A stretch of 64,000 bases of DNA from Ranitomeya imitator (taxonomy: Eukaryota). Each line of letters begins with the position of its first letter. Position 1 is the stretch's first letter. Shown here in pieces: positions 4,510-64,000 of this stretch. A program made the position numbers and the translations under genes. Below the pieces are notes generated by a model. It did not search any database, was not told where the DNA came from, and saw only the letters and a program-made list of their open reading frames with translations. Where the stretch lies: positions 46,872,001 to 46,936,000 of the forward strand of contig NC_091287.1 of the NCBI RefSeq assembly GCF_032444005.1, in the 5' to 3' direction.

Positions 4510-7500
4510 TAAAGGAGGAGTGTGGAAACCACACGGAAAAACGACCAAAATAGGGTATAATACTACTATGAAAAAGTCTTTATTGATACAAAAATGCATA
4601 AATATAAGTACAGTAAAAGAGAACATATAAACAGATCCCTGGACTACAGTGGTACAAGCAGAAGAAGTGGTGGCGACCGCTGGAACAGATCGCCACTGTA
4701 CAAAAGAGGACGCACAGACCGGAAACCCAGATAAAATGGTATAAATATATACTGGTAACTAGACCCATAGAATAACTAACCGTCTGGATGGTAAATATAT
4801 AGAGCAACTGCCTAACAAATGAGCAGCATATGCAGCAAATAAGGTCACACCTGAGACTATATACCACAGTGGGTTATTTATAATGCTACATTAAATAGTA
4901 CATAAATGCAGAACCTGCACACAACAAAGCAAAAAAGCAACCCATGTAACAGATGAAGTCAGAAATAAGACTATAAGCCACCCTGGGTTATTGTAATCCT
5001 ACATGGATTAAGCAGGGCCACAGTAGCAGTGTTGCTAAAAAACTCACCGGCAGAGCCGTATATGGGAAAAGTCACCCTATAAGAGACAATGTGTGAGCAC
5101 CCTTACGTAAACATGATCATGGAGCTAATAGCTGCATGTCGGAGGTATAACCAGGCAAAGCTGCCATGAACGCAGCTAATAATTACCTGAACGTGGGGGC
5201 ATACCAAGTGGCCGGGTCCGGTGTGCACGTCCGCCCGACGCGCGTTTCGGAGCAGAAGCTCCTTCGTCAGGGGGCGTGCCGGCTGGTGTGGATGACGGGG
5301 TTTATGTACCGGCAGAGTAGTTGATCACTAGAGCGGACGCCGGAAGTGACGCAGGCGCTACCATGGATACTGGAGACGCCAGGTGGCGGCGGCGTCATGC
5401 ACGGGTGTCACCATAGTGACCATCCCTGCATAATGACGCCGCAAGCCGCCGGGGGCCGCCGACCCAGGTGCGCATGCGTACAGGCGGCGCTCTAGTGATG
5501 AAAGCAGGCAAATAAGAGATGGCGGTAGGTAACCTCCCATCAAAAGGAATGAATGAAAGAGGCCAGAAACTGATTCAAAAAAGTGGGGAGGAAGGGGAGG
5601 GAAGGGGAGGGCTTAATAGCATGTTAAGTTACCGTAACCGTCAAACATGGGGTAAGTTATGTATATAAAGCTTATATTACCCCTGATCGTATATGATCCG
5701 CAGTATATAATCCAAAAGCAATTTTTTAAGGTCACTCAGACCAGATCTACGCGACATCTCCAACAAGTTAACGATATAACATGCCTATCGCCCCGGGTAA
5801 TGCTGTACACAAACTAAAATAAAATAAACAAAAAAATATAAACAAAAAATAAAAAATACATATGGACCCCACAAAAGTTAGAGTACATTACAACTCAATA
5901 CATAAAGAGACAAACATAAAGCAAAAAAACAAATAACAAAAAAATATATAATAAAATAGATGTATGCAACACATTCTTCTGATCTCCATCTCCGTGTATC
6001 TTCTATCGACTCCAGAGGAGGAAAAACTTGGATGCCATCATCATGTCACATCAACATAGCTGGACAGAAAGAATATCTAAGAATATAACAATAAAAAATT
6101 AGTAAAAACAAATACAAGGCGACCTATCCAGAAAAACACCACCACTCGCACCAAACAGGATCACAGAAAAGGAGCAAAACTGATGGTTTCATTTAATCCA
6201 TGGGGGTGGACAGTATTTAGGGTCCACATCCACCTTGATTCGAGCTGTGCCAATCTCTGGGATATATTACCCCCCCCCTAATGCCCAGTTCTATCATATC
6301 AATTCCTTTTACTTTCAGGCCGCTACTCTCACAATTATGGTGTGACTTGAAGTGCCTCGGAATCGTTTTTAACAAGTTGGGGTCCATAACACGTGCCGCT
6401 GCTTCGATCCCAAGGACATGTTCGCGTACCCTCGTTTTTAGCTGCCTAGTTGTGAGTCCCACATAAATTAGTGGGCAGGGGCATACCGCATAATAAATTA
6501 CGTTTCTCGATGTACACGTAATGGCCTTTGTGATCTTAAAGCTTTTAAGTCCTGAAGAATCTACAAAAGTGTCATCCCTAGCGATGTTGCAACATGCCAC
6601 ACATCTGCCACAAGTGCGACAACCCCCCCTAGGTTTATTACGTGGATCGTTTAGAAATGTCCTGGGAGAATTATCTACGTAGTGGCTACGCACTAGGTGG
6701 TCACGTATATTCTTGGACCTCCTAAAGGTGATGGATGGACGACTGGGTAAAAATTTGGCCAATGTTACGTCTGTTCTAAGAATCGGCCAGGCCCGTTCCA
6801 GAGCGTTTCTAATTTCTCCTGCTCTTGAGTTGTAATTGGTAATGAACCGGACAACTTCGGAATCACTGCCTTCCGTACGGTTAGCATATAGCAGTGAGTG
6901 TCTATTACTATATTTCGCTCTAAAATAAGCTCTTTTAATGGCCCGACTACTATAGCCCCTGTCTTTAAAATGGCATTTAAGATCTTTGGCCTGGATTTCA
7001 AACTCCGAGTCGGTGGAACATAACCGTCGTATGCGTAAGAACTGTCCAATGGGGACAGCCCGTACCATATGGGTCGGATGAGAGGAGGACGAGTGGAGCA
7101 GCATATTAGTAGCAGTTGGCTTTCTATATATTGTTGTTTGTATTGTATCCGTGCAGTCTCTCTTAAGAGTCACATCAAGGAATTCAATGCTTGATCTATT
7201 ACATGTGGCTGTGAGTCTGATGTTCAGAGGGTTGTCATTTAAAGTGGTCACAAATTGCATGAAGGACTCGCTACTACCCTGCCAGATGACAAGAATGTCA
7301 TCTATGTAGCGCACCCAAAGAAGGGCGCGCTCCATAGATGACAGTCCATCTGACCGTAGGAGGTCCCTTTCCCACAGCCCCAGGAACAGGTTTGCATATG
7401 AGGGCACATAAGCCGCCCCCATTGCTGTTCCCTGGAGCTGTAGGAAATAGGACCCCCTAAACGTAAAAAAGTTGTGGGTGAGGGCGAAATTGAGGACTTC

Positions 7501-7747
7501 TAAAAGGAACGCAACAAAATCCGGGGACCAATTGGATGTGGACAAGAAGAATTGAGCAGCTGCCAAACCATCACTATGGCGTATGCTCGTATACAAGGAT
7601 TCCACATCCATGGCCCCCATGACTGTGTCCGTCCCCAACTTCAGGTCATCAACCCTACGTAATAGCTGGTTCGTGTCCTTCAAGAAAGAAGGGAGTTCTT
7701 CCACAAGCGGTTGAAGGATCGAATCGATCCATTTATTTATCTGTTCT
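4510..7747 (-). mobile_element. Penelope-like retroelement (Neptune-type; RT, Cys-rich linker, GIY-YIG), 5'-truncated
   Basis: ORF 7704-6217 contains MDVESLYTSI, QGTAMG, WVRYIDD, CRTCGRCVAC and VIY...IYVG...RVREH. After a homopolymer frameshift at ~6270 it continues ...WMWTLNTVHPHGLNETISFAPFL* (stop 6161-6163). 13-nt TSD AGACCTAATAATT at 4497-4509 and 7748-7760. Confidence 0.92.
5225..5279 (-). ncRNA. Minimal type I hammerhead ribozyme in the Penelope pseudo-LTR
   Basis: The - strand reads GCACGCCCC-CUGACGA-A-GGAGC(UUCU)GCUCC-GAAAC-GCGC-GUC-GGGCGGACGUGC: both core boxes, a 5-bp stem II, a self-complementary ACGCGCGU stem III and a GUC cleavage triplet. Confidence 0.85.
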
Positions 7748-11543: not shown

Positions 11544-12287
11544 ATGTGCACAGACCAACTTAATACAAGTGGGTGCCATGCTGACTGCTTAGAAAGGCCA
11601 CTTTCTAGGGGATTTCGCAAACTGGGAAAACTAATAGCCAGGAACCCGTGGTTTTTCATCATTATCCCTGTTATTTTATCAGTTGGGTTAGGAGCTGGGT
11701 TTTATTTCCTGGAAGAAAGAGAATTTAACAAGTTACAAGAGCTCTTCATTCCAGAAGGAGGCATCGCAAAAGGCCAGAGAGATTTTATCAAGAAACATTT
11801 CCCCATGAATGAATCAGGTCAATTTTCAGCACAGCGGCTATATACGGCGAGCAGATTTGCTTCCCTCATTATTGTAACCACGTCAAAGAATATCCTCAAT
11901 AGAAGCAACTTCAAGGAGCTAGTGAAGTTGGACACAGCTGTGAAAAACCTGACCTCAAAGTCTTATCTAAGATTTAGACAACTATGTGCTGAAGTCAATG
12001 ATCACTCCTGTCTCCCAGCCAACCCATTACTCGCCTCAATGAGTAATAGTACAGAAGAAATCCTAATAACGTACCCAATGCTATTTAATGGGGAGTACGT
12101 CGGACTGTACATTGGAGGAGTGACCCTTGGTCCTGGCAACCAGTTACAGAAAGCCCAGGCTCTACGCTTTTTATATTACTTGAAGGATGATGATGAAAAA
12201 ATCCAAAATATCAGCCTGGAATGGCTTGAGTACTTCATGGAGGTTGTTCCTCATGAAATAGAAAAATTGCAGCTGAAATCATTGAAG
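11544..12287 (+). CDS. PTCHD3: Patched domain-containing protein 3-like, copy A, coding exon 1 (248 codons)
   Basis: MCTDQLNTSGCHADCLERPLSRGFRKLGKLIARNPWFFIIIP...: the CHxDC/TM1 start and ectodomain 1 of PTCHD3. Ends at AAG|GTAAGC donor (12287/12288), phase 0. The ORF-track tail after 12287 is intronic. Confidence 0.92.
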
Positions 12288-13021
12288 GTAAGCTATGATA
12301 TTGTTGTATTTTGTGGGCTTTTTTCGATTTGATTTAGAATATCTCTCAGTATTGTAAATCACCTTATGAATTAGGAATATAGTAGAAAGCATACGTCGTT
12401 TTTTTTGTTACCTGTAAGTATATGTTCAGGAAGTATGTAAAAAAAACCACATGATCATGAGAGAGAAGGATCTTAATTGCAAATTTTACCCTATTCTTAG
12501 CATATGATTTAATTATTGCTGGGACCCCTAGAGCCCCATCTGCAGAGCAGCCTCATCTTAAATAAAGCAAATCTATGACTGATTGACCTCCATTCCAATA
12601 AATTTCTATGGGCCGGCAAGAGAAAGCCTAGTATAGGTCTCTACTATTTCCGGTAGTCCCATTGTTATGGAGTGGAAGTTGAGCATTGTCACATGTACTT
12701 GATTCAAAACTTCATTCTCAGGATCTTGCGCCTCATTACTGGGATACATGGGCATCCCAGTGGTTGAACTCCCATTGAGCGGCCAGTTGTCTCTTATCAT
12801 ATGGATAGTAAATAACTTACAATTGTGGGAACACCACTATAAATTTAGATGCCCACACCTATTGTTCAAAGGGATGACACTCAGCTGGAGGTGCCTGGTA
12901 GCAGCTTTCTCCCTAATAAAAACATATGGCTACTTTCAATTGTATTTGGAAGTTGGGAAGAGATAGCTGTTGTGTGCATATATTGCAAATATGAAAACAA
13001 TATTTTTTGCATGACATACAG

Positions 13022-17705: not shown

Positions 17706-18341
17706 TTAAGGTATATGGACACTTTAAAATGATCTTTTAAATGCTAATATGATTGTATAGAATTCTTGTTCGTAATATTGATACGAGTTGGAATATGAAT
17801 CACTTTAATATTTTTTTCATAATAGCACAAAATGTATCATGTCTTCTGGTGTCCAACACTTAAAGCCTCTTATATTTTCTACCATTCTCCCCATGTTTTT
17901 ATTTCATATCATGTACTTATTATTTTTTCAGCTATGTCAATGATAAACTATGAAAATAAACCTAGAGGTCAGTTTTGTAAGAAGCCATTTATTAGTCTTT
18001 AATTGACAGGTATATGAGGAGCCTATAGATTTCAACACCATCATACATACCACCCCCAATGTTTTGTTGACCTTGTCAGCTAACCTAAAACCAAATGAAT
18101 TAACTAACATATGCATTTTTTTTAAATTGCAGATTCTGCTGTCTTTGTTTTGTTTTTGCCCATTTTTTTACCTAGTTAATTTATTTCGCATTGCTTATAT
18201 GACAGCAACAGACTTTACAGCAGTAAACAGAATTTTCCCACAATCAGTTATCCCATTTTCTAGTACACAATTCTAGGATGTAAGTTTCCTTAATGCTGCA
18301 GTAAATAACATAGTAATAGCTGTTTACTTTGTCTTGCATAG

Positions 18342-20203
18342 GAGTCGGAGTGGACAATATGTTCATTATAATCTCATGTTGGCAGCAAACAAAGGTGACG
18401 AGTACACTTGAAGAACGCATGGCTGACACGTACCAAGAAGCAGCAGTTTCCATCACCATCACTACACTCACGGATGTACTCGCATTCTACATTGGTATTA
18501 TGAACCACTTTCCCTCCGTGCAGTCATTCTGCATTTACACAGGAACTGCCCTGGTGTTCTGCTATATCTACTGCATATCTTTCTTCGGAGCAATATTGGC
18601 TTTGAATGGGATGCATGAAACAAAAAACAGACATTGGTTAACGTGCATGAAAGTGAATAACAAAAATGATGATAAAAGGAGCCTTTGGTATAACGCTTGT
18701 TGTGTTGGGGGAGCGTATGACCCAACTCGGGAAACAGAAACTGAACATCCAATATCTGCATTTTTTTATAAGTACTACGGACCATTTCTTACAAAACCAT
18801 GGGTAAAAGTATCGGTGTTACTTTTGTATCTGTTATATTTATCTGCCAGCATTTATGGAAGCGTTCAGATACAAGATGGGATCGATATTCGAAATTTGGC
18901 CAACGTCAATTCTTCCTTGACCCAATTTTACGATGTAGAAGCTTTATACTTTTCTAAGTATGGTCCAAGGGTTATGGTGGTGGTAAGTAATGAAGCGGAT
19001 TACTGGGATATAAAAACAAAGGAGATCATTCAAGCTTGTATGCAAGAGTTAGAAAATAATCACTATATAGCCAAGGAATATACGGTGTCTTGGTTGAGAA
19101 CGTATGAAGATATTGCTAAGGTAGAAAATCTGAACATAACCAATAAGGAGAATTTCCTTAAACATTTAAATCAAGTGTATCTAAATTTTTCTCAATTTAG
19201 GCAAGACATCATCACTAATGGGTATGAGATTAAGACGTCCAGGTTCTTCATCCAGGCCATTAATATTGCCACCGTGGGTGATGGTAAAAATATGTTAACC
19301 CATTTACGAGATGTCACAGACAATTGTGACGTTGAAGTATTTGTCTATCACCCATTATTCATTTACTTGGACCAGTATCATATAATAATTCAAAACACAA
19401 TTCAAAATATTGTAGTCGCAACAGTGGTCATGTTGGTCATTTCAGTTCTGTTCATACCAGACCCCTTGTGCGCACTGTGGGTAACATTTGCCATTGCATC
19501 CATCATAGCTGGCGTGACAGGCTTCATGTTTTTCTGGAAAGTCAACTTAGATTCTGTATCGATGATTAATCTTGTCATCTGTATCGGGTTTTCGGTCGAC
19601 TTTTCAGCTCATATAGTATATGCGAGTGTTTCTAACAGGAAACCAAATGCTAACCAGAGAGTAATCGATGCTCTGCATGTCCTGGGTTACCCTATTGTAC
19701 AAGGGGCTTTGTCAACAATTTTAGGAATTGCTGCCCTTTCTGCAGCAAAAAGCTATATATTCCAAACTTTTTTTAAGATCATGCTCCTCGTCATCACATT
19801 TGGGGCACTTCATGGCTTGTTATTTATACCTGTGTTTTTGATGACAGTAGGAGCCTGTAGAAAATCAGGGCATGTCAAAGAGGAGCCTAAAAACGATGAA
19901 AATAAGAATAATAAAGTGTTACCACCTGCAGTTATTTACCGGGCTCACCCTTTAACAACTGATATCCAAATAAGAAAACCGGAGGCGAGTTTGCCAGGAT
20001 ATGCCATTTCAACATCCAATGTGATGGACTACAGTAGTCTTGACGGGAACTACTTCTGTATGAGTCGGCAGGGAAGTAACTACTCTGTACTTCATCCGGA
20101 TGTCCAAAAACAGGGAAATGAAAATGTAAGCGAACTCGTGGAACATAGAAGGAGAATGCTACAAGTTTACCTGGAACACAAAACTGATCAGAAATGCCAC
20201 TAA
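18342..20203 (+). CDS. PTCHD3: PTCHD3-like copy A, coding exon 4 (SSD TM4-6, ectodomain 2, TM8-12, long C-tail); spliced protein ~957 aa
   Basis: GCATAG|GA acceptor. Open frame GVGVDNMFIIISCWQQT...ITITTLTDVLAF...GFSVDFSAHI...FGALHGLLFIPVFL to TAA 20201-20203. Exon lengths 744+122+146+1862=2874 nt, divisible by 3. Confidence 0.93.
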
Positions 20204-21714: not shown

Positions 21715-24390
21715 GGCTATGTTCACACATTGTGTTTTTGCAGCGTTTTTTTTTAATGCCAATTTTTCAGCTGCGTTTCACAGTACCTGCACGTATGAGA
21801 TTTCAGAAATCTCATGCACACACATTGTTTTTTTTTTCCTGACTATTTTGTCAAAGACCTTGGTTTTTGTAAAATGCAGCACATCACTTCTTTCAGCATT
21901 TTTCACCCATTGAAAGCAATGGGTAGTGCGAAAACTCTGCAAAAAAAAAAACCGCAGGTATCAAGTTTTGCTGTGTTTTTGGTGATAAAACCTGATGAAG
22001 CTGAATCAGACTTTTTGTATGCACTAAACTTTATTAGCATGTACAAGAGACAAATGTACCCTGGCAAACCCGCAGCAAAAAAAAAATGCACCAAAAATGT
22101 ACAAAGTTTGACCAGCTTAGAGATGCCCTTAATCTGGTAGACTGGGACAATATCCTCAGAAATAAGAATACAGATAATAAATGGGAAATGTTTAAGAACA
22201 TCCTAAATAGGCAGTGTAAGCGGTTTATACCTTGTGGGAATAAAATGACTAGAAATAGGAAAAACCCAATGTGGCTAAACAAAGAAGTAAGAGAGGCAAT
22301 TAACAGTAAAAAGAAAGCATTTGCACTACTAAAGCAGGATGGCACCATTGAAGCTCTGAAAAACTATAGGGAGAAAAATACTTTATCTAAAAAACTAATT
22401 AAAGCTGCCAAAAAGGAAACAGAGAAGCACATTGCTAAGGAGAGTAAAACTAATCCCAAACTGTTCTTCAACTATATCAATAGTAAAAGAATAAAAACTG
22501 AAAATGTAGGCCCCTTAAAAAATAGTGAGGAAAGAATGGTTGTAGATGACGAGGAAAAAGCTAACCTATTAAACACCTTCTTCTCCACGGTATTCATGGT
22601 GGAAAATGAAATGCTAGGTGAAATCCCAAGAAACAATGAAAACCCTATATTAAGGGTCACCAATCTAACCCAAGAAGAGGTGCGAAACCGGCTAAATAAG
22701 ATTAAAATAGATAAATCTCCGGGTCCGGATGGCATACACCCACGAGTACTAAGAGAACTAAGTAATGTAATAGATAAACCATTATTTCTTATTTTTAGGG
22801 ACTCTATAGCGACAGGGTCTGTTCCGCAGGATTGGCGCATAGCAAATGTGGTGCCAATATTCAAAAAGGGCTCTAAAAGTGAACCTGGAAATTATAGGCC
22901 AGTAAGTCTAACCTCTATTGTTGGTAAAATATTTGAAGGGTTTCTGAGGGATGTTATTCTGGATTATCTCAATGAGAATAACTGTTTAACTCCATATCAG
23001 CATGGGTTTATGAGAAATCGCTCCTGTCAAACCAATCTAATCAGTTTTTATGAAGAGGTAAGCTATAGGCTGGACCACGGTGAGTCATTGGACGTGGTAT
23101 ATCTCGATTTTTCCAAAGCGTTTGATACCGTACCGCACAAGAGGTTGGTACACAAAATGAGAATGCTTGGTCTGGGGGAAAATGTGTGTAAATGGGTTAG
23201 TAACTGGCTTAGTGATAGAAAGCAGAGGGTGGTTATAAATGGTATAGTCTCTAACTGGGTCGCTGTGACCAGTGGGGTACCGCAGGGGTCAGTATTGGGA
23301 CCAGTTCTCTTCAACATATTCATTAATGATCTGGTAGAAGGTTTACACAGTAAAATATCGATATTTGCAGATGATACAAAACTATGTAAAGCAGTTAATA
23401 CAAGAGAAGATAGTATTCTGCTACAGATGGATCTGGATAAGTTGGAAACTTGGGCTGAAAGGTGGCAGATGAGGTTTAACAATGATAAATGTAAGGTTAT
23501 ACACATGGGAAGAAGGAATCAATATCACCATTACACACTGAATGGGAAACCACTGGGTAAATCTGACAGGGAGAAGGACTTGGGGATCCTAGTTAATGAT
23601 AAACTTACCTGGAGCAGCCAGTGCCAGGCAGCAGCTGCCAAGGCAAACAGGATCATGGGGTGCATTAAAAGAGGTCTGGATACACATGATGAGAGCATTA
23701 TACTGCCTCTGTACAAATCCCTAGTTAGACCGCACATGGAGTACTGTGTCCAGTTTTGGGCACCGGTGCTCAGGAAGGATATAATGGAACTAGAGAGAGT
23801 ACAAAGGAGGGCAACAAAATTAATAAAGGGGATGGGAGAACTACAATACCCAGATAGATTAGCGAAATTAGGATTATTTAGTCTAGAAAAAAGACGACTG
23901 AGGGGCGATCTAATAACCATGTATAAGTATATAAGGGGACAATACAAATATCTCGCTGAGGATCTGTTTATACCAAGGAAGGTGACGGGCACAAGGGGCA
24001 TTCTTTGCGTCTGGAGGAGAGAAGGTTTTTCCACCAACATAGAAGAGGATTCTTTACTGTTAGGGCAGTGAGAATCTGGAATTGCTTGCCTGAGGAGGTG
24101 GTGATGGCGAACTCAGTTGAGGGGTTCAAGAGAGGCCTGGATGTCTTCCTGGAGCAGAACAATATTGTATCATACAATTATTAGGTTCTGTAGAAGGACG
24201 TAGATCTGGGTATTTATTATGATGGAATATAGGCTGAACTGGATGGACAAATGTCTTTTTTCGGCCTTACTAACTATGTTACTATGTTACTATGTTACTA
24301 TGTACTAAAAACTAACAAAAAGAGTGTTTTTTGTAAATAGCTTAAACTTGGCATAAAAAAACCCTGCAAAAATGCAACGCGTGAACATAT
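21715..24390. mobile_element. GGCTATG-type MITE split by the CR1 at 22103-24299
   Basis: Left end GGCTATGTTCACAC, degraded right end CGTGAACATA. The interior continues on both sides of the CR1. Confidence 0.6.
22103..24299 (+). mobile_element. Young 5'-truncated CR1 LINE (complete RT domain, no endonuclease)
   Basis: Long open frame with [40 protein letters not shown] and FADD; (ACTATGTT)n tail; TSD ATGTAC at 22097-22102 and 24300-24305. Confidence 0.95.
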
Positions 24391-35506: not shown

Positions 35507-35948
35507 AAAGTTAAACCACCACTCAAGTGTTTTTTATTGCAGTGCTGGAGTAGTGCTACTAGTTTAAATTCCCTGCCCCTATTCTTATACTTACCAGCTG
35601 AAGTCTTCAGCTCTTTCCGACTCCGTTCCTGCTGGTCTCCACCAGTTTGTGACCTGCCGGATCATTGCAGCGATCCAAAAGTCGCAACTCAATGTACGTC
35701 TATAAGAGCCTTGTTCTGAAAGCCTTGATCTGGCTTTCATAGACTTGCATTGAGATCATGCATCTGTTAAGTTTGACTTTTGGTCAGTTAATAGTTGAGG
35801 TCGCAAGACAGCGTCGCGAGACTGGAACGGAGCCGAGAAGAGCTGAAGACGGCAGCTGGTAAGTACAAGATTAGTTTCAGGGAATGTAGATTACTAGCAA
35901 TACTAGCACCACTCCAGCGCTAAAATAAAAAAGCTGGAGTGGTGCTTT
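35507..35948. mobile_element. Palindromic Kolobok/T2-type MITE
   Basis: Degenerate TIR ACCACCACTC.../...GGAGTGGTGCTTTA with fold-back interior. Confidence 0.55.
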
Positions 35949-39842: not shown

Positions 39843-41660
39843 CTTTATTTATATAGCGCCAACATATTCCGCAGTTTAACAGTTTCAAACACAAAAGTCA
39901 TAAGTAACAACGTTAACAATACAATAATTAAAGCAAAGTAAAACGACCCTGCTCGTGAGAGCTTACAATCTACAATGAGGTGGGGGAGATACAAAGTACC
40001 GGTGTGTATTTACAATGATGTATTTACAATGATGGTCCAGCCATCCTCAGGGGTTGGGTAATAGATAGGGATAGTGAATGGGCTACACACACACACAAAC
40101 ATAAAATGACTTTGATTAGTGAACGTGATAGGCCGCTCTGAACAAATGTGTTTTGAGTGAGCGCCTAAAACTATGCAAATTGTGGATGGTCCGAATATCT
40201 TGGGGTAGAGTATTCCAGAGGATTCGCGCAGCACGGGAGAAGTCTTGTAGTCGGGAGTGGGAGGTACGGATTAGTGCAGAGGTTAGTCGAAAGTCATTTG
40301 CAGAGCGCAGTGGTCTGTTAGGCCGATAGACAGAAATGAGGGAGGAGATGTAAGGGGGTGCCTCACTGTGGAGAGCTTTGTGGGTGAGAACAAGTACTTT
40401 GAATTGTATCCTGTAATGAATGGGCAGCCAGAGTAACGACTGACAAAGAGCGGACGCGTCCAAGTAACGATTAGCCAGATGGATGACCCTGGCTGCTGCA
40501 TTAAGGATGGACTGGAGAGGGGAAAGTCGAGTGAGGGGGAGGCCAATTAATAGAGCATTGCAGTAGTCCAGGCGGGAGTGGATCAGGGCGACAGTGAGGG
40601 TTTTAGTTGTCTCCATGGTGAGAAAAGGGCGGATTCTAGAGATGTTCTTTAGGTGTAAGCGGCACGAGCGGGCAAGAGATTGTATATGGGAGGTGAAGGA
40701 GAGATCGGAGTCAAACATAACACCCAGACAGCGCGCCTGCTGCCAGGGTGTTATTATGGTGCCACCCACGGAGATGGAAATGTCAGATTTAGGGAGGTTA
40801 GTAGATGGTGGGAGCAGAAGAAGTTCAGTTTTGGAGAGGTTGAGTTTCAGATAGAGAGCAGACATGATGTTGGAGACTGCAGACAGACAGTCAGTGGCGT
40901 TCTGTAGTACAGCGGGGGTAAGGTCAGGGGATGACGTGTATAGTTGTGTGTCATCAGCATAAAGATGGTACTGAAAGCCAAATCTGCTGATGGTCTGTCC
41001 AATTGGGGCCGTGTAGAGGGAGAAGAGAAGGGGGCCAAGGACTGAGCCCTGAGGTACCCCGACAGCGAGAGGAAGAGGAGATGAAGTGGAGCCAGAGAAC
41101 AGAACACTGAAGGAGCGGTCAGAAAGGTAGGAGAACCAGGAGAGAGCAGTGTCCTTAATGCCTAGTGACTGGAGCCTAGAGAGTAACAGAGGGTGGTCAA
41201 CAGTGTCAAAAGCTGCAGAAAGATTGAGAAGAATGAGCAGAGAGTGGTCACCATTACGTTTTGCTGTCAGAAGGTCATTGGTCACTTTGATGAGTGCAGT
41301 TTTTGTCGAATGTAGGGGGCGGAAACCGGACTGTGAAGGGTCTAGGAGGGAGTGAGTGGAGAGGTAACGTGTAAGGCGGGAGTATATCAGGCGCACCAAG
41401 AGTTTAGAGATGAAGGGGAGATTGGAGACCGGTCTGTAGTTGTTTGTGCAGGATGGGTCGAGGGTGGTTTTTTTTTAGTAATGGAGTAATGATAGAGTGT
41501 TTGAAGGAGGAGGGGAAAATGCCAGAGGAGAGGGAGAGATTAAAGATTGTAGTTAGGTGACTTGTGACGACTGGAGAGAGAGACTGGAGGAGATGTGAGG
41601 GAATGGGGTCGGTAGTGCATGTAGTCGGACGAGAAGAGGAGAGGAGCTTGTAAGTACTGT
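39828..41660 (-). mobile_element. 5'-truncated L2 LINE (different subfamily; RT domain)
   Basis: [47 protein letters not shown]; the 3' UTR ends in a (TAT)n tail. Confidence 0.93.
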
Positions 41661-42324: not shown

Positions 42325-43958
42325 CTAGGGGCAATCAGGATCTATGTTGTCATAATCAAATTTTGTTTCTCTTTGACCGTTGTTTAACCTTTGCTCATCT
42401 CTATGAGCTTTAATCTTGGTAGCATCATCATTTCTCATACAATTCCCAAACAATGTTAAAAACACTGGAAGAAAAACTAGTCCATGTATCAGACCAAATG
42501 AAATGACCAGAAATATGATCTTAAAAAATGTTCTAAAGATGTAACTCTGAGCTGCAGATAGGGCTACCACCCCCAGGATGGTGGACACAGCACCCTGTAC
42601 TATAGGATAGCCAAGAGAGTGTAAGGCATCAATCAACTTTTCATTTGCGTTGGCTTTCTGATTTGAGACATAAGCATATGTAATGTGAGCAGAGAAGTCT
42701 ACTGAAAAACCAATGCAGATGATGAGGTTGATCATCGAAATGGAATCTAAGTTAACATCCCAGTACGCCATGAAACCCGTAACACCTACTATAATAGACA
42801 CTATGGTGAATGTCACCCACAACGAGCACAGAGGATTTGGAATTAGCAGAAGTGAGATCACAAACATGGTGGCAGCAGCAACAGCGACATTTTGGATGGT
42901 GTTATCTATAATTACGGCATATTGGTCAAAATATATAAATGCGGGATGATAGACAAGTACCGGAATCTCACAACTCTTCGCTGTATCTCGAACTTGGTTT
43001 AGCATGTTTCTCTCATCCACTGCTGAAGTAACGTTTACAGTCTGGATAAAGAAACGAGAAGCTGTTATAGCTCCCGACTGAATGTCCACATCTTGTTCAA
43101 AGTCTGGAACTACATTGAATAATATTGATAAATTACTGATAAAGTTGTGTTTATCACTGATGTTCAGGTTCATCTTTTTAGCCACATCAATGTATACCCT
43201 CATCCAAGATTCGGAGAGAGACCCACCACTAACATAGGAATTATTTATAAATGAATCCAGACACTTGTCAATCTTACTCTGGACATTTGAATCCCAGTAT
43301 GAAACCTTCTCAGTCACCACAACCATAACTCTGGGACCATACTCTGAAAAATATAAATCCTCATCATCATAGAAGGATCGAATGTAAGAACCATCAGTAG
43401 CTAAATTTCTTAAGTCAATTCCTTCTTGAATCTGAAAACACCCGTATATACTGCTGGCCATATATCCTCCATAGAGAATAATAACAAAGATCTTAGCCCA
43501 GATGTTGGTGAGGAATGGACCATAATGCTTGCGAAAAAAAATAGTCATTGGATGGTCGGTCTCTTTATCAGTGATATGGCTGTATCCTCCTCCAACACAA
43601 CACATGTTATATGCAGGTGAACGATGGTCATCTTTTTCTTTTGCTACTTTCATACAAGTGAACCAGTGCCTGTTACTCTTCTCTCTTCTGCCATTGAGAG
43701 CTAAGAAAGCCCCAAAGCAAGTGACATTGTAGAAGAAACAGAACAAGATGGCGGTCCCGGTGTAGATACAAAATGATTGCACTGACTTAAAAGAGGTCAA
43801 AATACCAATGTAGAAAGCGAGAACATCGGTGAGTGTCGTGATTGTTATAGAGACAGCAGCATCCGCGTATGTCTCAGCCATTCTTTCTTGAACTTTATCC
43901 TTTACTTTAGTTTGTTGCCAGCTGGAAATCATGATGAACATGTCATCTACCCCAACAC
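42325..43958 (-). CDS. PTCHD3: PTCHD3-like copy B, coding exon 4; spliced protein ~881 aa
   Basis: TTCTAG|GT acceptor. GVGVDDMFIMISSWQQT...GFSVDFSAHI...FGLIHGLVFLPVFL...YDNIDPDCP-TAG. Exon lengths 744+122+146+1634=2646 nt, divisible by 3. Confidence 0.93.
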
Positions 43959-44625
43959 CTAGAAGTAACAGTAATAACATTCGAAAGTTTAAATGTAAGG
44001 AAACTTTTGATGAGATACTTAAAAAATAAAACACACCAAGCTGACGTTTTCTCAAGTACACGCATTTAGCATTGGTTGAAAGATCTAAAATTCCAATCAA
44101 ATGAGACAGATCAAATGCTCATGGTTAAAACATTCTTAGAAGAAATTGTCTTTTTCAAACCTCATAAATTATATTTGGTTTACTGTTTATTGCTTATTTC
44201 TACAGTATTGCCATGATTGGATCCAAAAAGCTTTTAGAAAGGGGTTATCTGGTTTAATAAAACTGCTATTCTCTTTCTGCAAGTTGCTTGAAAACAACAA
44301 ACTTTTCTTTATCCACCCTCCCTGCATCCAGCACTGAGTTTCCACCGCTGGTCCTTATGTCTGTCATTGTCTGTAGTGACGTCACATCAACGCAATGAAC
44401 CAAAAAGCTCTGAGCAGCTCATTCAGTTATTGGCTGCCATGCTATTGATGTGATGGGTCAGCACAAATGGCAATAACAGACACAGGGAGCAGCGATGGAG
44501 CCTTAAAACTAGACAGGGAAGGATCATTAAAATTCAGGTTTCTTTTTTTATTTTTTTTTTAGAAAAAAACAAACAAACTCAAGCTCAAAGGTAGAGGGAT
44601 TATTCAAAACCAGAAACCCCTTTCA

Positions 44626-47095: not shown

Positions 47096-48076
47096 TAAAA
47101 GTTAATAACAAAAAAAATGTGGATGATAACAATACAGCACAAATGAAATAATTAATGATAAAAAAACACATGGTATAGATTCTAATAGACAGCATATTTT
47201 ACCATATGTGTTAAAACATTAAGAGCTCATGCTGCTTGTATTGGATTTATGATTTATGAATCAATATGGCATCTATAGAGATCTTTGGGTTTATATTGGA
47301 TTTTTGTTTCTGATTTCATAATGAACGCTTTTCAAACAAACGTAAAGTGTTAGCCTCCTGAAAAATAAAACATTATAAACTGAAAATCGTAATATTTGTA
47401 AATGATTACCATAACCGGTAAATTACTTAACTCTCCGTAACCATATTCTCCCATTCCAGTCTATAATATATGGCCGTGATATTTCATGTTTTTAGCTAAA
47501 AGAGTATAGTCTTGAGTAATTGCTATCGGTGTGTGAATATATGGCTAGTGACTGAGATCTAATGTTTTTTCTTGGTATGAGAAGATGCCACTTTTCTCTT
47601 TCTCCAGAAATTCAGACCCCAAATTCAGACATAATACATGCAGCCTATATCCATTTTTTTTTTTACAAATTTTTTTTTAATTGCTATGTTAGGAAAATTA
47701 TTTTTCGGAGGGTTACTGTTTACTAAGTTCTAAAGAAATTGTGATTTTTGTGATATTTCCTCTATAAACATTGCTTCAAGAGGAAAATATGTAATAATAT
47801 ATATAGTGTCACATAATATGCCTATGGATCCATCAAACGAATTGGGTCTTTTTGCCACCATTTAGGGTGCACGCAGCTGTTCTAAAATTGATATTAAAGC
47901 TACATATGCTTCATAGTGTTCACTACTAAATACACATGGTTATATTACAGTTATATAGTAACTACTTATATTTCTGTATCATGAAATTACAATTGAACAA
48001 AAAAAAATGCTTATTAATGAATATTAAAGGAATTTTAGACTTAGCAACGTTTCAGAAATCATGATAAATTCCTTAC

Positions 48077-48820
48077 CTTTATTTCAGTGAGTTGAAGACT
48101 ATTCTTTGTGAAGAATTTGATAAATTCATTGATCCACCGCAGGCTTCTTTCTCTGTCGCTCTCGCTGTCTTCTCTCAGATAGTATATCAATTTGATTGCT
48201 TTGGCTTTTTGCACAACATCATCTGAATTTAGCGTCACTCCACCCAGGTATGTTCCCAGGAATATTTTACCTTGAAACATGGGGTAACTTATTGGTATTG
48301 TCGCTATCAGACTCACATTACCTTGTACCACAGAGAGGAGAGGATTAATCGTCATACATGTTTTTCCCTGGATCTCTGCACATAGTTGATGAAATGTGAG
48401 GCTTTCGTTAGCAGCGGGATCCATCACTGCGAAGTTCTGCACCATCTCATCCAGCTTCATAAGCTCTTCAAAGGTCTGAACGTTTATGACATTATCGGAT
48501 GTACTTACGGCTATGAGCGAAACAAACAAACCTTCTGTATATAGTCGCTGCGGAGAAAACTGCCCGGAGTCATCGGTGGGAAAATGTGTCTTTACAAATT
48601 CTCTCTCACTTTTAGCCGGGCCACCGATTGGGGTGAACTGTCCTTCGATGTCATTTGCTTGTCTTTGGGGTAAAAAGTAAAAGCCGGCTCCCAAGCCAGC
48701 AGATAAAGCAAATGGAATTAGTAGGAACCACCAGGGGTACCTTCCCACCAGCTTACCAAGCCAACTGAAGGCACGAGAGAGCGGTTTCTGTATACAGTCT
48801 GTGTGACACCTGGCCATCAT
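48077..48820 (-). CDS. PTCHD3: PTCHD3-like copy B, coding exon 1 (248 codons)
   Basis: MMARCHTDCIQKPLSRAFSWLGKLVGRYPWWFLLIP...LTEIK, then AAG|GTAAGG donor. The real ATG is at 48820 (the track starts at a TTG). 744 nt, identical in length to copy A exon 1. A splice acceptor (TTCTTCATTCTTTATAG|) lies 14 nt upstream of the ATG. Confidence 0.92.
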
Positions 48821-49399
48821 CAATCCCCTAATATCTATAAAGAATGAAGAACGAATATGTTTCTACTGTTAATAGTGATTATATAGCACACCTCAGCGAC
48901 GCCAGAAGCAGCAAATAATTGGATGACAAATGCTTTCTATTGCCAATAAAGATTTTCCACGGAAAAAGGAAGTTTTCCATATCTGGTTTACTTGGTAACT
49001 AATGCACAATTGACCTTTGCACGAGGAGATGTGTTTTTCGCACTATGACAGCTAAAAGTCCAGTCATTAGTATTAATACAAATAAAACAGAAGTGAATTA
49101 ACTGGAAAAGACTTGTCAATGCTACCTGCCAAATGAAATGCATGACATGATAAGGACAATGAACTAGGGGCTGTTTATAGAGCTCATATACTCACAGGGC
49201 AGGTTGTGCCTTCTCCACCCTCTTTTCATGCTGGGGACAGCGACTGAGCGAAAAAGACCCGGGACAGGTCAAAATTTCTCCCCAAATGGTTGCCTGTGTT
49301 TCCATATAATAGTATATTGAATCTGTACACCAATAAGATATATTCTTGTGAAGCATTTGAAAATCAGAGGGTGTGGTTGATTTTACTTTCCACTGACTG

Positions 49400-50430: not shown

Positions 50431-50960
50431 GTAGAGTTCCCAGAAAGGCAGACCTGCACTCACTTTCAGTCAACTATCTGTGTTACTTTCCTTAAATTTT
50501 TGTACCACTAGTACTGTATGAAGCTGATGTTTGTGTTATCTCAATGTGGCTTGGCAAAAAAAGAAAAAAAAGGAGTTACATGAGGTATCATGGCTCCCAT
50601 ATAAGAATGCTGACACCGCTCCCTTAGCCACCACGTCTTAATTGAAACTTCAGTTCCTCATGCTGAATGCTGGCCCAGACAGTGATACAACATGTATGGC
50701 CTATTGTGGACTGCAGAAGGGCCATTACAAAATGTTCTACTGTGGGTCAATTGATCAGTCACCTACATGTGTTACTATCCTTACATTTTTCTACTAATAG
50801 TAGTCTATGAAATTGATGTTTGCGCCACTTGAGTGTGGCTGGGAAACTTTTTAGGTGTTGCATGAGGTATCAGGTCTCCCAACTAAGAAGGCTTAGACCA
50901 CTCCCTTAACCACCACATTTTAATTGAAACTTCAATTCAAAACTGTAAATGCTGTCCCAG

Positions 50961-52091
50961 ATCCTCTCCTCTCTGCAGTACAAGGTAATGTGAGTCTGAT
51001 AGCGACAATACCAATAAGTTACCCCATGTTTCAAGGTAAAATATTCGTGGGAACATACCTGGGTGGAGTGACGCTAAATTCAGATGATGTTGTGCAAAAA
51101 GCTAAAGCAATCAAATTGGTATACTATCTGAGAGAAGACAGCGACAGCGACAGAGAAAGAAGCCTGCGGTGGATCAATGAATTTATCAAATTCTTCACAA
51201 AGAATAGTCTTCAACTCACTGAAATAAAGGTAAGGAATTTATCATGATTTCTGAAACGTTGCTAAGTATAAAATCCCTTTAATATTCATTAATAAGCATA
51301 TTTTTTTGTTCAATTGTAATTTCATGATACAGAAATATAAGTAGTTACTATATAACTGTAATATAACCATGTGTATTTAGTAGTGAACACTATGAAGCAT
51401 ATGTAGCTTTAATATCAATTTTAGAACAGCTGCTTGCACCCTAAATGGTGGCAAAAAGACCCAATTTGTTTGATGGATCCATAGGCATATTATGTGACAC
51501 TATATATATTACATATGTATCTCTTGAAGCAATGTTTATAGAGGAAATATCACAAAAATCACAATTTCTTTAGAACTTAGTTAACCATAACCCACCGAAA
51601 AATAATTTTCCTAACATAGCAATTAAAAAAAATTTGTAAAAAAAAAATGGATATAGGCTGCATGTATTATGTCTGAATTTGGAGTCTGAATTTCTGGAGA
51701 AAGAGAAAAGTGGCATCTTCTCATACCAAGAAAAAACATTAGATCTCAGTCACTAGCCATATATTCACACACCGATAGCAATTACTCAAGACTATACTCT
51801 TTTAGCTAAAAACATGAAATATCACGGCCATATATTATAGACTGGAATGGGAGAATATGGTTACGGAGAGTTAAGTAATTTACCGGTTATGGTAATCATT
51901 TACAAATATTACGATTTTCAGTTTATAATGTTTTATTTTTCAGGAGGCTAACATTTTACGTTTGTTTGAAAAGCGTTCATTATGAAATCAGAAACAAAAA
52001 TCCAATATAAACCCAAAGATCTCTATAGATGCCATATTGATTCATAAATCATAAATCCAATACAAGCAGCATGAGCTCTTAATGTTTTAAC
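50961..52091 (+). pseudogene. Inverted partial duplicate of PTCHD3-B (3' part of exon 1 plus first ~860 nt of intron 1)
   Basis: Reverse complement of 47210-48345, roughly 98% identical by eye. Encodes PLLSAVQGNVSLIATIPISYPMFQGK...LTEIK with an intact GTAAGG donor at 51229/51230. No start of exon 1, and I found no matching exons 2-4 downstream. Confidence 0.9.
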
Positions 52092-54875: not shown

Positions 54876-56509
<1,634 letters not shown>

Positions 56510-59065: not shown

Positions 59066-59253
59066 TTAATATGACAGCAGAACTTATTTTTTTAAGCAAA
59101 AATGAAAAGCAGCATTTATCAACTTAAATACAACAAAAAACTAACAGAATTAATCATTCAGCAAGATGTTAGATATAGTAATTGCTTTTTTATCATAAGA
59201 AGAAAGTATGCTAATCTTCTGCCTATGTTTTTCTTCAGAACTAGAGGATCAGG

Positions 59254-59311
59254 ATGGAGGAGGGAGAAGATCACATAGCAGTTGTTGGCATAGGATGCAA
59301 TTTCCCTGGAG
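59254..59311 (+). CDS. Type I polyketide synthase (animal PKS), first coding exon: MEEGEDHIAVVGIGCNFPG
   Basis: Strong Kozak context (AGGATGG). IAVVGIGCNFPG is the canonical first beta-strand motif of type I KS domains. GGAG|GTGAGT donor, phase 1. Upstream acceptor TTTTTCTTCAG| at 59238 with a CTAAT branch site at 59211-59215. Confidence 0.88.
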
Positions 59312-59346
59312 GTGAGTGAGTGTTATAAACCATGATTCCCAATTAA

Positions 59347-60106
59347 AAGGGGTATTCTTAAAATATCATTGATGGCATAGTTGGTGTCATATACAAATTG
59401 AACCAATTTTTTACAAGCCTACACTACTTCCAGCTTTACAACCCATGGCACTATTCAGCCTATGGAACTAAGTGTCAGTGCAGCGAGTGCATCACTAGAC
59501 CGTGCCTGCGGTGGGGAGTAATATTTTTAAGCACAGATCAGTACTTGGGAAAAACTATGGAGGTCCTCATACCACGAGGATGGGACATCATACTTGTTTG
59601 GGAAATATCATAGTGTTTGGGGGGCTGTGGGATCATCATTCTGTATGGAGGATATTTTTTCCCATCAATCGAACTGTATACGGGGGAGCTGCAGGGCTGT
59701 GTCTGGCCAGACAGGAGCATGGTCTGATCATATCACAGCTCCTGACCAAGGAAGGAAGCAAAGGATGGTATACAGACAGGACAGCTTGGAATTGCAGATG
59801 CTGCTTTCTGTGAGGTAAAACATTTCCCTGCCTGTTTTTAAAAACGATTTACCTCACAAAAAGCAGCATTTGTGATCCCATGCATTAATGTCTGTATCTC
59901 CTCTTTTTGTCTCCCCTCCTGCCCAGGAGCTGTGGTATGATCAGGCCATGTTCCTGTCCGATAGGACACAGCCATTGCACAGTACACAGCAGGGGCACAT
60001 TTCTAAGATTATCTCAGCACAGGAACATTTTCACATCCAATTGTGGAAATTATTTTTATTCCAAGATCTATTGATTAAGATATACTTTGTACATGGGAAA
60101 GCCCCT
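59347..60106. mobile_element. Kolobok/T2-type fold-back MITE in the PKS intron
   Basis: TTAA-AAGGGG...CCCCT-TTAG ends; internal inverted arms 59700-59815 and 59846-59960. Confidence 0.6.
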
Positions 60107-60120
60107 TTAGCTATGCTTAA

Positions 60121-60315
60121 CCCCTTCATGACCTTGGGATTTTTCGTTTTTCCGTGCTCGTTTTTCGCTCCCCTCCTTCCCAGAGCCATAACTTTTTTAT
60201 TTTTCTGTTAATATGGCCATGTGAGGGCTTATTTTTTGCGGGACGAGTTGTACTTTTGAACGACATCATTGGTTTTAGCCTGTCGTGTACTATCCCGTCC
60301 AAGGTCAGAAAGGGG
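60121..60315. mobile_element. Internally deleted piggyBac-type MITE
   Basis: TTAA|CCCCTT...AAGGGG|TTAA. Confidence 0.85.
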
Positions 60316-60488
60316 TTAATATTAAGTGATAAAATAATAGTAAAAATATAATAATAATAATAATAATTATTAAGTTTGGCCTGTTGGTTTTGCCCTCTAT
60401 AACAGTCACAGTCTCTCGTGTAACTCCTTGTGAAAATTAATTGTTGTCCTCACTTGCATTCTTTACAAGTAGGGAAAGTGAACTATAA

Positions 60489-62934
60489 GGCCGGCGTCAC
60501 ACTTGCGAGTTTTACGGACGTAAGAGTGCAGAAACTACGTCCGTAAAACTCACAAAAAATACGGCACAATTATTCTCTATGCCCCTGCTCCTATCTGCCG
60601 TATTAAACTGATCCGTATTATACGGCTTTCTATGGCCGTAGAAAATTGCAGCATGCTGCGTCTGTCACCGTATTGCGCAAATAAAACGTCAATGAAAGTC
60701 AATGGAAGCCCCAAAATTACGGATTACACACGGACCAGCAGTGTGACTTGCGAGGAATACGCAGTGCTGTTAGAGAGAAAAGCCGGTAATTCAATTACCG
60801 GCTTTTGCTTTCTCCTTCCTAAACCCGACATGATATGAGACCTGGTTTACATACAGTAAACCATCTCATATCACCATTTTTTTTGCATATTCCACACTAC
60901 TAATGTCAGTAGTGTGTATATGTAAAATTTGGCTGTTCTAGCTAGTAAAATAAGGGGTTAAATGGCGGAAAAAATTGGCGTGGGCTCCTGCACAATTTTC
61001 TCCGCCAGAGTAGTAAAGCCAGTGACTGAGGGCAGATATTAATAGCCTGGAGAGGGTCCATGGTTATTGGCCCCCCCCCCCTGGCTAAAAACATCTGCCC
61101 CCAGCCACCCCAGAACAGGCACATCTGGAAGATGTGCCTATTCTGGCACTTGGCCACTCTCTTCCCATTCCCGTGTAGCGGTGGGATATGGGGTAATGAA
61201 GGGTTAATGTCACCTTGCTATTGTAAGGTGACATTAAGCCTAATTAATAATGGAGAGGCGTCAATTATGACACCTATCCATTATTAATCCAATACTAGTA
61301 AAGGGTTAAAAAAAAACACACACATTATTAAAAAATAATTTATTGAAAAAATCACAAAGGCTGTTGTATTAATTTATTCTACTCTCAATCCACTCACTGA
61401 AGACCCTCGATCTGTAAATTAAAAAAGAAAAATAAACCAACAATATACATACCTTCCGAGGATCTGTAAGGTCCAACGATGTAGATCCATCTGAAGGGGT
61501 TAAAATATTTTGCAGACACGAGCTCTGCTAATGCAGGCTGCTCATGTCTGCAATACCCCGGCGAATGAAGCTAAATATAGGTCAATGACCTATATTTAGC
61601 TTCATTTGCGGTGAGGTGCCCTCTGCTGGCTGTTCCTAGATCGTGGGAACTTACCTAGAAAGCTCCCTTGCTCGAGTTCATATGAGGACAACCAGCAGAG
61701 GGCGCCCTCTTATGATCTCGAGCAAGGGAGCTTTCTAGGAAAGTTCCCACGATCTAGGAACAGCCAGCAGAGGGCGCCTCACCGCAAATGAAGCTAAATA
61801 TAGGTCATTGACCTATATTTAGCTTCATTCGCCGGGGTATTGCAGACATGAGCAGCTACATTAGCAAAGCTCGTTTCTGCAAAATATTTTAACCCCTTCA
61901 GATGGATCTACATCGTTGGACCTTACAGATCCTCGGAAGGTAATTATATTGTTGGTTAATTATTTTTTTTTTAATTTACAGAGCGAGGGACTTCAGTGAG
62001 TGGATTGAGAGTAGAATAAATTAATACAACAGCCTTTGTGATTTTTTCAATAAATTATTTTTTAATAATGTGTGTGTGTTTTTTTTAACCCTTTACTAGT
62101 ATTGGATTAATAATGGATAGGTGTCATAATTGACGCCTCTCCATTATTAATCTGGCTTAATGTCACCTTACAATAGCAACGTGGCATTAACCCTTCATTA
62201 CCCCATATCCCACCGCTACACGGGAATGGGAAGAGAGTGGCCAAGTGCCAGAATAGGCGCATCTTCCAGATGTGCCTGTTCTGGGGTGGCTGGGGGCAGG
62301 TGTTTTTAGCCAGGGGGGGGCCAATAACCATGGACCCTCTCCAGGCTATTAATATCTGCCCTCAGTCACTGGCTTTACTACTCTGGCGGAGAAATTTGTG
62401 CGGGAGCCCACGCCAATTTTTTCCGCCATTTAACCCCTTATTCTACTAGCTAGAACGGCCAAATTTTGCATATACACACTATTAACATTAGTAGTGTGGA
62501 ATATGCAAAAAAAAAAAGGTGATACGAGATGGTTTACTGTATGTAAACCAGGTCTCATATCATGTCGGGTTTAGGAAGGAGAAAGCAAAAGCCGGTAATT
62601 GAATTACCGGCTTTCTGCTATCTCGCGCTGTATTAAGTAATAATATATATACATATATGTGTCTCCCTGACATATATATATATAGAGACATTATATATGT
62701 TTGTTTTTTTTTAACACATGGATCCCTTGTATGTCCGTATGTCGTTTTGCAAGCCTGCGATAAAAACACGCATTACGGCTGCCATACGGATTACATACGG
62801 AGGATGCCATGCGCAAAAAACGGTAACACACCCTGCCTATGGAGGAGCTACGGACCACTATTTTCGGGACTTTTCAGCGTATTACGGCCGTAATATATGG
62901 ACCGTATTTTCATACGCTGTGTGTGACGCCGGCC
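60489..62934. mobile_element. 2.45-kb Harbinger-type non-autonomous element, largely one giant palindrome, in the PKS intron
   Basis: TIR GGCCGGCGTCACAC/GTGTGACGCCGGCC, TSD TAA/TAA; ~60775-61677 is mirrored by ~61716-62620. Confidence 0.9.
61616..61777. promoter_or_regulatory. Three CTCF-like motifs at the centre of the palindromic element
   Basis: CCAGCAGAGGGCAC on the - strand (61616-61629); CCAGCAGAGGGCGC on the + strand (61692-61705 and 61764-61777). Motif match only. Confidence 0.5.
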
Positions 62935-63595
62935 TAAGTGTATTTGTGCAAGTGAGAATTTTAACAAAATGTTGTATTTTTGCATTGCTGCATTGAGTGT
63001 TAACTTTTTTTCACTTGTTGTATAAATTATTACAAAAGCATGTTATTTATGCTCGATAGCAAAAGTTTGTTGTTTTTTCATAATGTTAATATTAAGATTT
63101 AAAGTGGCCTCCCATGTTAGTTTTATCTTTCAGGTCTGTGTAGTTAAAGTGATGCCAAATATATACAGCTTTTTATATGTTTTACTACTTTTTCACAATA
63201 GTACACTAAATAGAAAAAAGTAGTTTTTTTCTATGGTATGGCTCCATACTCCAAGAGTCATAACTGGATTTACTTTTATGTCGAAAACGGTATGTGAGAT
63301 TTTTTTGGTGCAATAAATTCTATATTTAATACAAATAATTTTGGGTTACATACAAATTATTGATTGACTTTTTATTACTTTATTCTAAGGAATATAAATA
63401 TTTTCTAAGCATAACTTAAAAAATATATAATAAAAGGAAAATAAAATTAGAAAGCAGAAGTTTCTTCTTTCCTTTTCTTTTAAGTTTATTTTATCTTATA
63501 ATTATCGACTATTGTGTGATAAAATTATTTTGAAACAATTCTCGTTTATAAAAAATATTTTTTTTTAAATATTTTTTAAAATGCTCATTTACTAG

Positions 63596-63749
63596 GTGAA
63601 GGAGTTGACAATTTTTGGAAAGTTATTTTTCATGGGAAAAATTGTGCAACAGAGATACCAGAAGAAAGATTTCCTCTGAAAAAATGGTATGATGCCGATC
63701 AAACCAAACCAGGCAAAATATATACCAGTCGAGCAGCTTTTGTAAATGG
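63596..63749 (+). CDS. Type I polyketide synthase, second coding exon: (G)EGVDNFWKVIFHGKNCATEIPEERFPLKKWYDADQTKPGKIYTSRAAFVN(G)
   Basis: TTTACTAG| acceptor; its phase-1 start joins the 59254-59311 exon in frame (G|GT=Gly); GG|GTAAGT donor. The FW..G...EIP.ER....WYD.D..KPGK.YT pattern is typical of PKS ketosynthase N-termini. The gene continues beyond the window. Confidence 0.9.
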
Positions 63750-64000
63750 GTAAGTACACTGGGAGGAATTTATCATTTGTGTTGTGCTTGTTTTGCTTTG
63801 CGTCATTTTATTTCCATGACACGTTTATAAAAGTTGTGCAGCATCTTTAATGCAAAAAGTCGCAAACTCACTCCAATATGGGGGTGAGGATTACGTAAAA
63901 AGTAGAGTATTTTTTCTAAATAGAATTGTAATATCTTAACATGTGCCAAATTTATCAAACATCACGTGACACGTTGAAAACTTTGGAACAATTAAGCAGA

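Follow-up and report, generated by a model that had tools for sequence, protein, structure and literature searches.

The stretch of DNA analysed here (the window) comprises 64,000 nucleotides of the poison frog Ranitomeya imitator (NCBI RefSeq assembly GCF_032444005.1, contig NC_091287.1, positions 46,872,001 to 46,936,000 of the forward strand). Close to its right-hand end it contains two short exons separated by a transposon-filled intron (Table 1), and with these, judged from sequence, very probably begins the coding region of a frog gene orthologous to the iterative type I polyketide synthases (PKSs) of vertebrates, the MuPKS/pks1 family. An earlier note, made from the letters of the window alone, had proposed two such exons with canonical splice sites and with phases 1 then 2; re-reading of the sequence and a script confirmed every coordinate, and the phases as well. 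Together the exons encode 71 residues, which make up the opening strand and helices of the thiolase fold of a ketosynthase (KS) domain, and no catalytic residue is among them.

Table 1. Features at the start of the PKS gene, in window coordinates (P0183, L002, A1 and X2/X3 are introduced in the text; UTR, untranslated region; MITE, miniature inverted-repeat transposable element)
Feature	Position	Strand	Basis
3' end of upstream (5'UTR) intron	59205..59238	+	sequence re-read; X3 contig depth
First coding exon, 73 nt	59239..59311	+	script check, P0183 tblastn, L002 blastn, alignment A1
Intron, 4284 nt, GTGAGT...CTAG, 61% A+T	59312..63595	+	sequence re-read, script check
Degenerate palindromic repeat, 279 nt, arms 71-76% complementary	59695..59973	.	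repeat analysis
MITE, 203 nt, 21-nt terminal inverted repeats, TTAA at both ends, CCC..GGG termini	60117..60319	.	repeat analysis
Non-autonomous element, 2.4 kb, 14-nt terminal inverted repeats GGCCGGCGTCACAC, TAA on both sides	60489..62934	.	repeat analysis
Second coding exon, 154 nt, phase 1 in, phase 2 out	63596..63749	+	PF00109, PDB, vertebrate PKS N-termini, X2/X3 contigs
Donor of the next intron, GTAAGTACA	63750..63758	+	sequence re-read; L002 leaves the genomic sequence here

Two exons encode the N-terminus of a ketosynthase

The acceptor of exon 1 reads TGCTAATCTTCTGCCTATGTTTTTCTTCAG/AAC on the forward strand (a slash marks a splice boundary), with its AG at 59237-59238, and is preceded by a branch-like CTAAT at 59211-59215 and then a pyrimidine tract. 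Fifteen nucleotides of 5'UTR, which include an in-frame TAG at 59242-59244, lead to a start ATG at 59254 in good context (AGG ATG G). The coding part of the exon is 58 nt long, or 19 codons and one nucleotide, and thus ends in phase 1 at the donor GGAG/GTGAGT (59311/59312). Its translation is MEEGEDHIAVVGIGCNFPG, after which a Gly codon is divided by the intron. Exon 2 begins at TTTACTAG/GTGAAGG (63595/63596) and ends at AATGG/GTAAGT (63749/63750); its translation, EGVDNFWKVIFHGKNCATEIPEERFPLKKWYDADQTKPGKIYTSRAAFVN, follows directly after the split Gly codon. Exon 3 lies past the end of the window.

Homology searches were run exon by exon. Exon 2 on its own matches the N-terminal ketoacyl synthase family PF00109 with 31.4 bits (E 1.9e-7; gathering cut-off 20.8 bits) over profile positions 18-65, which bears out the earlier prediction of a significant match to a KS domain. 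A sequence search of the PDB with exon 2 gave 22 chains with E values no higher than 1, which are KSs of PKSs or of hybrids of PKS and non-ribosomal peptide synthetase (best E 8e-13); the top match is a bacterial trans-AT PKS, and there is no fatty acid synthase (FAS) chain among the 22. The same note had described the peptide as PKS-like and unlike FASN, and the PDB result agrees with this on both counts. Features from the ESM Atlas are in agreement with a KS N-terminal domain and add nothing further. Exon 2 has some unusual residues, with FHG in place of VEG and PLKK in place of NTKE.

Pfam gave no match to the 22-residue stretch of exon 1, a query too short for it, but the place of exon 1 in the domain can be read from P0183, a complete frog KS. 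Residue 6 of P0183 corresponds to profile position 2, so that the 20 residues before exon 2 fill positions 2-17 without a gap, exon 1 accounting for 2-16 and the split Gly following. With tblastn, exon 1 is 76% identical to residues 1-21 of P0183 and exon 2 is 67% identical to the same protein, and P0183 found no further PKS exons in the 64-kb window besides these two. Both pieces also fit the N-termini of seven vertebrate PKSs in a multiple alignment (A1), where the one empty column between them is the split Gly.

The nearest relatives are vertebrate polyketide synthases

Bacterial megasynthases rank at the top of an exhaustive protein search, by virtue of scores summed over 3-6 KS copies. 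Per KS copy these multi-KS proteins are only 30-45% identical to exon 2, whereas the closest single-KS vertebrate proteins, from frog, bird, fish, lungfish and turtle, are 57-69% identical. The highest value belongs to a protein of the coqui frog Eleutherodactylus coqui (XP_066440823.1, 69%), and birds (P0061 and P0097, 64-65%) and a fish (P0045, 63%) are close behind. A second protein search brought in further fragments, from lungfish, salamander (Pleurodeles), turtle, lizard and sturgeon, together with a 319-residue frog-like protein from a Logan contig. Short proteins from genomic contigs of other vertebrates start with ../GEG and end with ..DG/, which indicates that both intron positions are conserved. 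The nearest relatives, which are vertebrate PKS N-termini with the same layout at the start, support the proposal of a PKS start.

These data also bear on whether the exon pair might instead represent chance open reading frames (ORFs), the start of FASN, or bacterial contamination or recent transfer. A bacterial source could be read into the multi-KS megasynthases that score highest in the exhaustive search and into the trans-AT PKS that is the best PDB match. However, the bacterial scores are sums over repeated, more distant KS copies, the exons are bounded by spliceosomal introns at positions common to the coqui and other vertebrates, the intron between them carries interspersed repeats of frogs that are high-copy in sequencing runs of related species, and the PDB search returned no FAS chain. 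We consider an origin of this kind hardly credible, and regard it as refuted by these observations.

The homologous exons are joined in the cDNA of a related frog

A 2876-nt Logan contig of related frog cDNA (L002, from run SRR5149441) matches exon 1, its nucleotides 368-417 being 90% identical to 59266-59315 (blastn). From the exon 1 homologue it runs on uninterrupted into 63595-63743, and a multiple alignment shows it diverging from the genomic sequence precisely at the donor of exon 2. This is direct evidence that the homologous junction of exons 1 and 2 is used in the cDNA of a related frog, at the very point, 59311 to 63596, at which the earlier note had predicted it. Further downstream L002 encodes the KS_C, linker and AT domains, and of the catalytic residues of its KS, the Cys (in DTACSS) and the second His (in NIGH) are present.

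Three further runs from relatives (X1-X3), possibly of RNA, contain an exon 2 that is 94-97% identical to that of the window. One contig of X2 (362 nt, depth 6.2) and one of X3 (459 nt, depth 2) are placed on exactly 63594-63750; the surplus of two letters at the left edge arises because exon 1 and the intron both end in AG. In the bin 59201-59400, the depth corresponds to 64 nt (X2) and 71 nt (X3) of contigs with these same depths. If the 71 nt of X3 are set up to 59309 they occupy 59239-59309 and start at the acceptor, leaving 25 upstream letters unplaced, which fits a separate 5'UTR exon. The depth of the related-run contigs on the unique flanks of the intron is zero, and the contigs of all three runs go on for 138-286 nt past exon 2. 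The contigs of these close relatives therefore appear to skip the intron. A 5'UTR exon or promoter was sought in the window by blastn with the coqui locus described below and with the 5'UTR of L002, which returned the two exons only, and a CpG scan of 48.8-59.3 kb gave no island with a G+C content above 0.5.

The orthologous locus of the coqui

XP_066440823.1, the closest relative found, is a 186-residue protein that RefSeq names 'putative uncharacterized protein encoded by LINC00614'. At its locus (L001; GCA_035609145.1 CM069429.1) five exons match P0183 residues 1-21, 20-71, 72-125, 123-193 and 193-261. As in the window, exon 1 has an acceptor in front, 58 coding nucleotides and the donor GGAG/GTAAAT, and the acceptor implies an upstream UTR exon; exons 1 and 2 also agree with those of the window in size and splice phases. 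The homologue of intron 1 is 3.1 kb long, as compared with 4284 nt in the window, and the intron after exon 2 is 12.9 kb. One difference is that the frame is open upstream of the shared ATG, and for this reason the coqui gene model starts earlier.

In the coqui annotation, exons 1-3 and a read-through of intron 3 make up the misnamed 186-residue model, while the adjacent 1920-residue PKS model starts at an internal Met in exon 4 (locus position 35592). In Pfam the longer model contains KS, KS_C, KAsynt_C_assoc, Acyl_transf_1, PKS_DH_N, PS-DH, adh_short and KR, and two more families. The earlier note had warned that an automated annotation could easily truncate the 5' end of the gene, and this is what has happened in the coqui.

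Intact gene or decaying remnant

Several observations weigh against an orthologous, working PKS gene. The window holds 71 of roughly 2000 residues, the Cys-His-His triad and the AT, DH, KR and ACP domains all lying past base 64000. A run search for the exon gave no RNA run from the species of the window itself, the best matches being relatives with 0.42 of 12 sampled words. Splicing in the X runs was deduced from the arithmetic of contig depths and not read directly at the junction, and the figure for X1 (19 nt) fits poorly. At the end of coqui intron 3, TTTTACAT/GTATCATGAAC (L001:35480-35530), the dinucleotide AT is found where the AG of the exon 4 acceptor is expected, and it is at this site that the annotation is divided; the AT may reflect true damage to the gene, a variant of one individual or a mistake in the assembly. 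In L002 the frame breaks by 1 nt between ..KTIDPS and VQYVEAQGTGT (L002:1230-1340), and Gln stands where the EAHGTGT motif has the first of the catalytic His residues of the KS, so that the KS of the SRR5149441 frog may be non-condensing or decaying. Finally, the dN/dS ratio of the window against two other frogs is 0.32-0.43, which on the branch of the window exceeds the 0.07-0.17 between the other two (only 69 codons).

Taken together, the raised ratio, the possible lesion in the coqui assembly and the substitution and frame break in L002 would suit a different reading, namely that the two exons are what survives, at the 5' end, of a decaying or dead PKS gene that is transcribed and spliced without yielding a working synthase. 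The LINC00614 relics of placental mammals would be its parallel: short models of the KS N-terminus exist in ape and shrew, and placental mammals keep only such short relics. Loss of the gene in frogs was proposed by Hojo et al. (2015), who found no pks gene in Xenopus tropicalis (PMC4604110). Decay is nevertheless opposed by the state of the window, in which the start codon with its context, the two donors, the two acceptors and the reading frame show no damage, and by dN/dS values that, even where raised, are well below 1. It is also opposed by the relatives: three related runs have contigs that look spliced and extend past exon 2, the coqui retains a 1920-residue open model with KS, AT, DH and KR, and the lesions may be assembly errors or individual variants. 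On balance we consider decay unlikely.

The intron, its repeats and the neighbouring genes

The earlier note had described the intron as filled with at least three palindromic MITEs. Three palindromic structures are indeed present in its 4284 nt, but the largest is a single nested composite and not several separate MITEs. It consists of a 1836-nt palindrome (60779-62614) within the 2.4-kb element, with arms of about 909 nt that are 96% complementary (over 913 nt), each built of smaller hairpins, around a centre of 18 nt at about 61696. The 4% divergence between the arms speaks against a fold-back artefact of the assembly. In the pre-mRNA this palindrome could fold into a very long hairpin. The MITE at 60117..60319 is, by our reading, piggyBac-like. 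Other copies of the intron elements were not found within the window, but the elements are high-copy in the runs of related frogs; this MITE is very high-copy in their contigs, its summed depth in run X1 being 39,688-88,900.

The locus as a whole is rich in transposons, with a Tc1/mariner-type transposase ORF and several reverse-transcriptase ORFs of long interspersed nuclear elements (55482-56123(+), 22086-24071(+), 6217-7704(-) and 40116-41399(-)). At least two copies of a PTCHD3-like gene, which encodes a patched domain, and a duplicated first-exon fragment are located upstream of the PKS start (11544-12332(+), 18329-20203(+), 42325-44100(-), 48059-48823(-) and 50924-51247(+)). The minus-strand copy is arranged head-to-head with the PKS start at a distance of about 10.4 kb. 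In the coqui, the 18 kb of available sequence in front of the PKS gave no PTCHD3-like match.

Proposed expression of the gene and its significance

We propose that the two exons are the start of the frog orthologue of the vertebrate PKS gene, expressed as follows. Transcription would start at an untranslated exon further upstream, from which the RNA would be spliced into 59239, with translation beginning at 59254. The 4.3-kb intron would be removed and 59311 joined to 63596, as expected if splicing in R. imitator is the same as in its relatives. Provided that the gene is also intact past the window, later exons there would supply the Cys-His-His triad and the remaining domains, and the enzyme would build up a polyketide from malonyl units through repeated decarboxylative condensation.

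A bolder extension holds that the frog PKS is intact and active and that anurans make an endogenous polyketide, for example a polyene skin pigment similar to the psittacofulvins of parrots or, following what has been proposed for fish, a lipid that nucleates otoconia. We regard this as quite improbable. If true, an active frog PKS would contradict the published view that the gene was lost in frogs, and the duplicated PTCHD3-like transporter genes might help to handle the product. To our knowledge, vertebrate PKS products are known only for parrots, and a frog member of the family, the more so one from a poison frog with bright colours, may reasonably be considered for a role in pigmentation or biomineralization.

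The view that frogs lost PKS was put forward by Hojo et al. (2015), working from X. tropicalis (PMC4604110). Lin et al. (2024) describe PKSs as widespread in vertebrates, and a term search of that paper gave no mention of amphibians (PMC10764717). Frog and salamander PKS models are already public under uninformative names. The window corrects the outdated statement on loss in frogs and adds to the database evidence from the coqui and Pleurodeles that amphibians have retained the vertebrate PKS. It also establishes where, at its 5' end, a gene mishandled by annotation pipelines truly begins; in the coqui the three split-off exons were even named after a human non-coding RNA.

Comparison with known systems

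Animal PKSs, and those of vertebrates among them, are already well described (PMC4604110; PMC10764717; PMC11739604), and the frog gene start is an ordinary member of the family. The RefSeq name 'putative uncharacterized protein encoded by LINC00614' is also attached to short KS-N-terminal models in birds, lizards, lungfish, fish, frog and ape. Judged from these names, the LINC00614 locus of mammals would be a relic of the vertebrate PKS gene; a literature search for LINC00614 found no paper.

In published KS trees the animal PKSs are separate from animal FAS (PMC4604110; PMC10764717). FASN is similar to PKS in having a PF00109 KS domain and in being a multidomain type I megasynthase, and it differs in the matches of exon 2 in the PDB, where there are 22 PKS chains and no FAS chain with an E value of 1 or below.

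Medaka OlPKS and zebrafish pks1 (wu:fc01d11) are needed for otolith nucleation. They belong to the vertebrate PKS family with the domain order KS-AT-DH-KR-ACP (PMC4604110), and Hojo et al. reported no counterpart of them in frogs. The fish N-terminus P0045 shares the motif FHGKNCA with exon 2 of the window.

Budgerigar MuPKS (LOC101880715) is the psittacofulvin synthase, an enzyme of parrot feather pigment; the frog member is known here from its first 71 residues. MuPKS and the other bird PKSs, the GenBank models of which are named APDA/MLCA synthase or PpsD-like, start as the frog protein does, with M, about five residues, then (I/V)A(I/V)VG.(G/A)C.FPGG and, across the splice boundary, EG. 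MuPKS has six exons, of which exon 3 contains residue 112, exon 5 residue 243 and exon 6 residues 428-1957 (PMC11739604). The gene start had been called hidden, and for a reader without tools it is; the layout itself, however, is the known and conserved one of six-exon MuPKS (PMC11739604). The exon map of the coqui locus matches that of MuPKS, with five small 5' exons followed by one giant exon.

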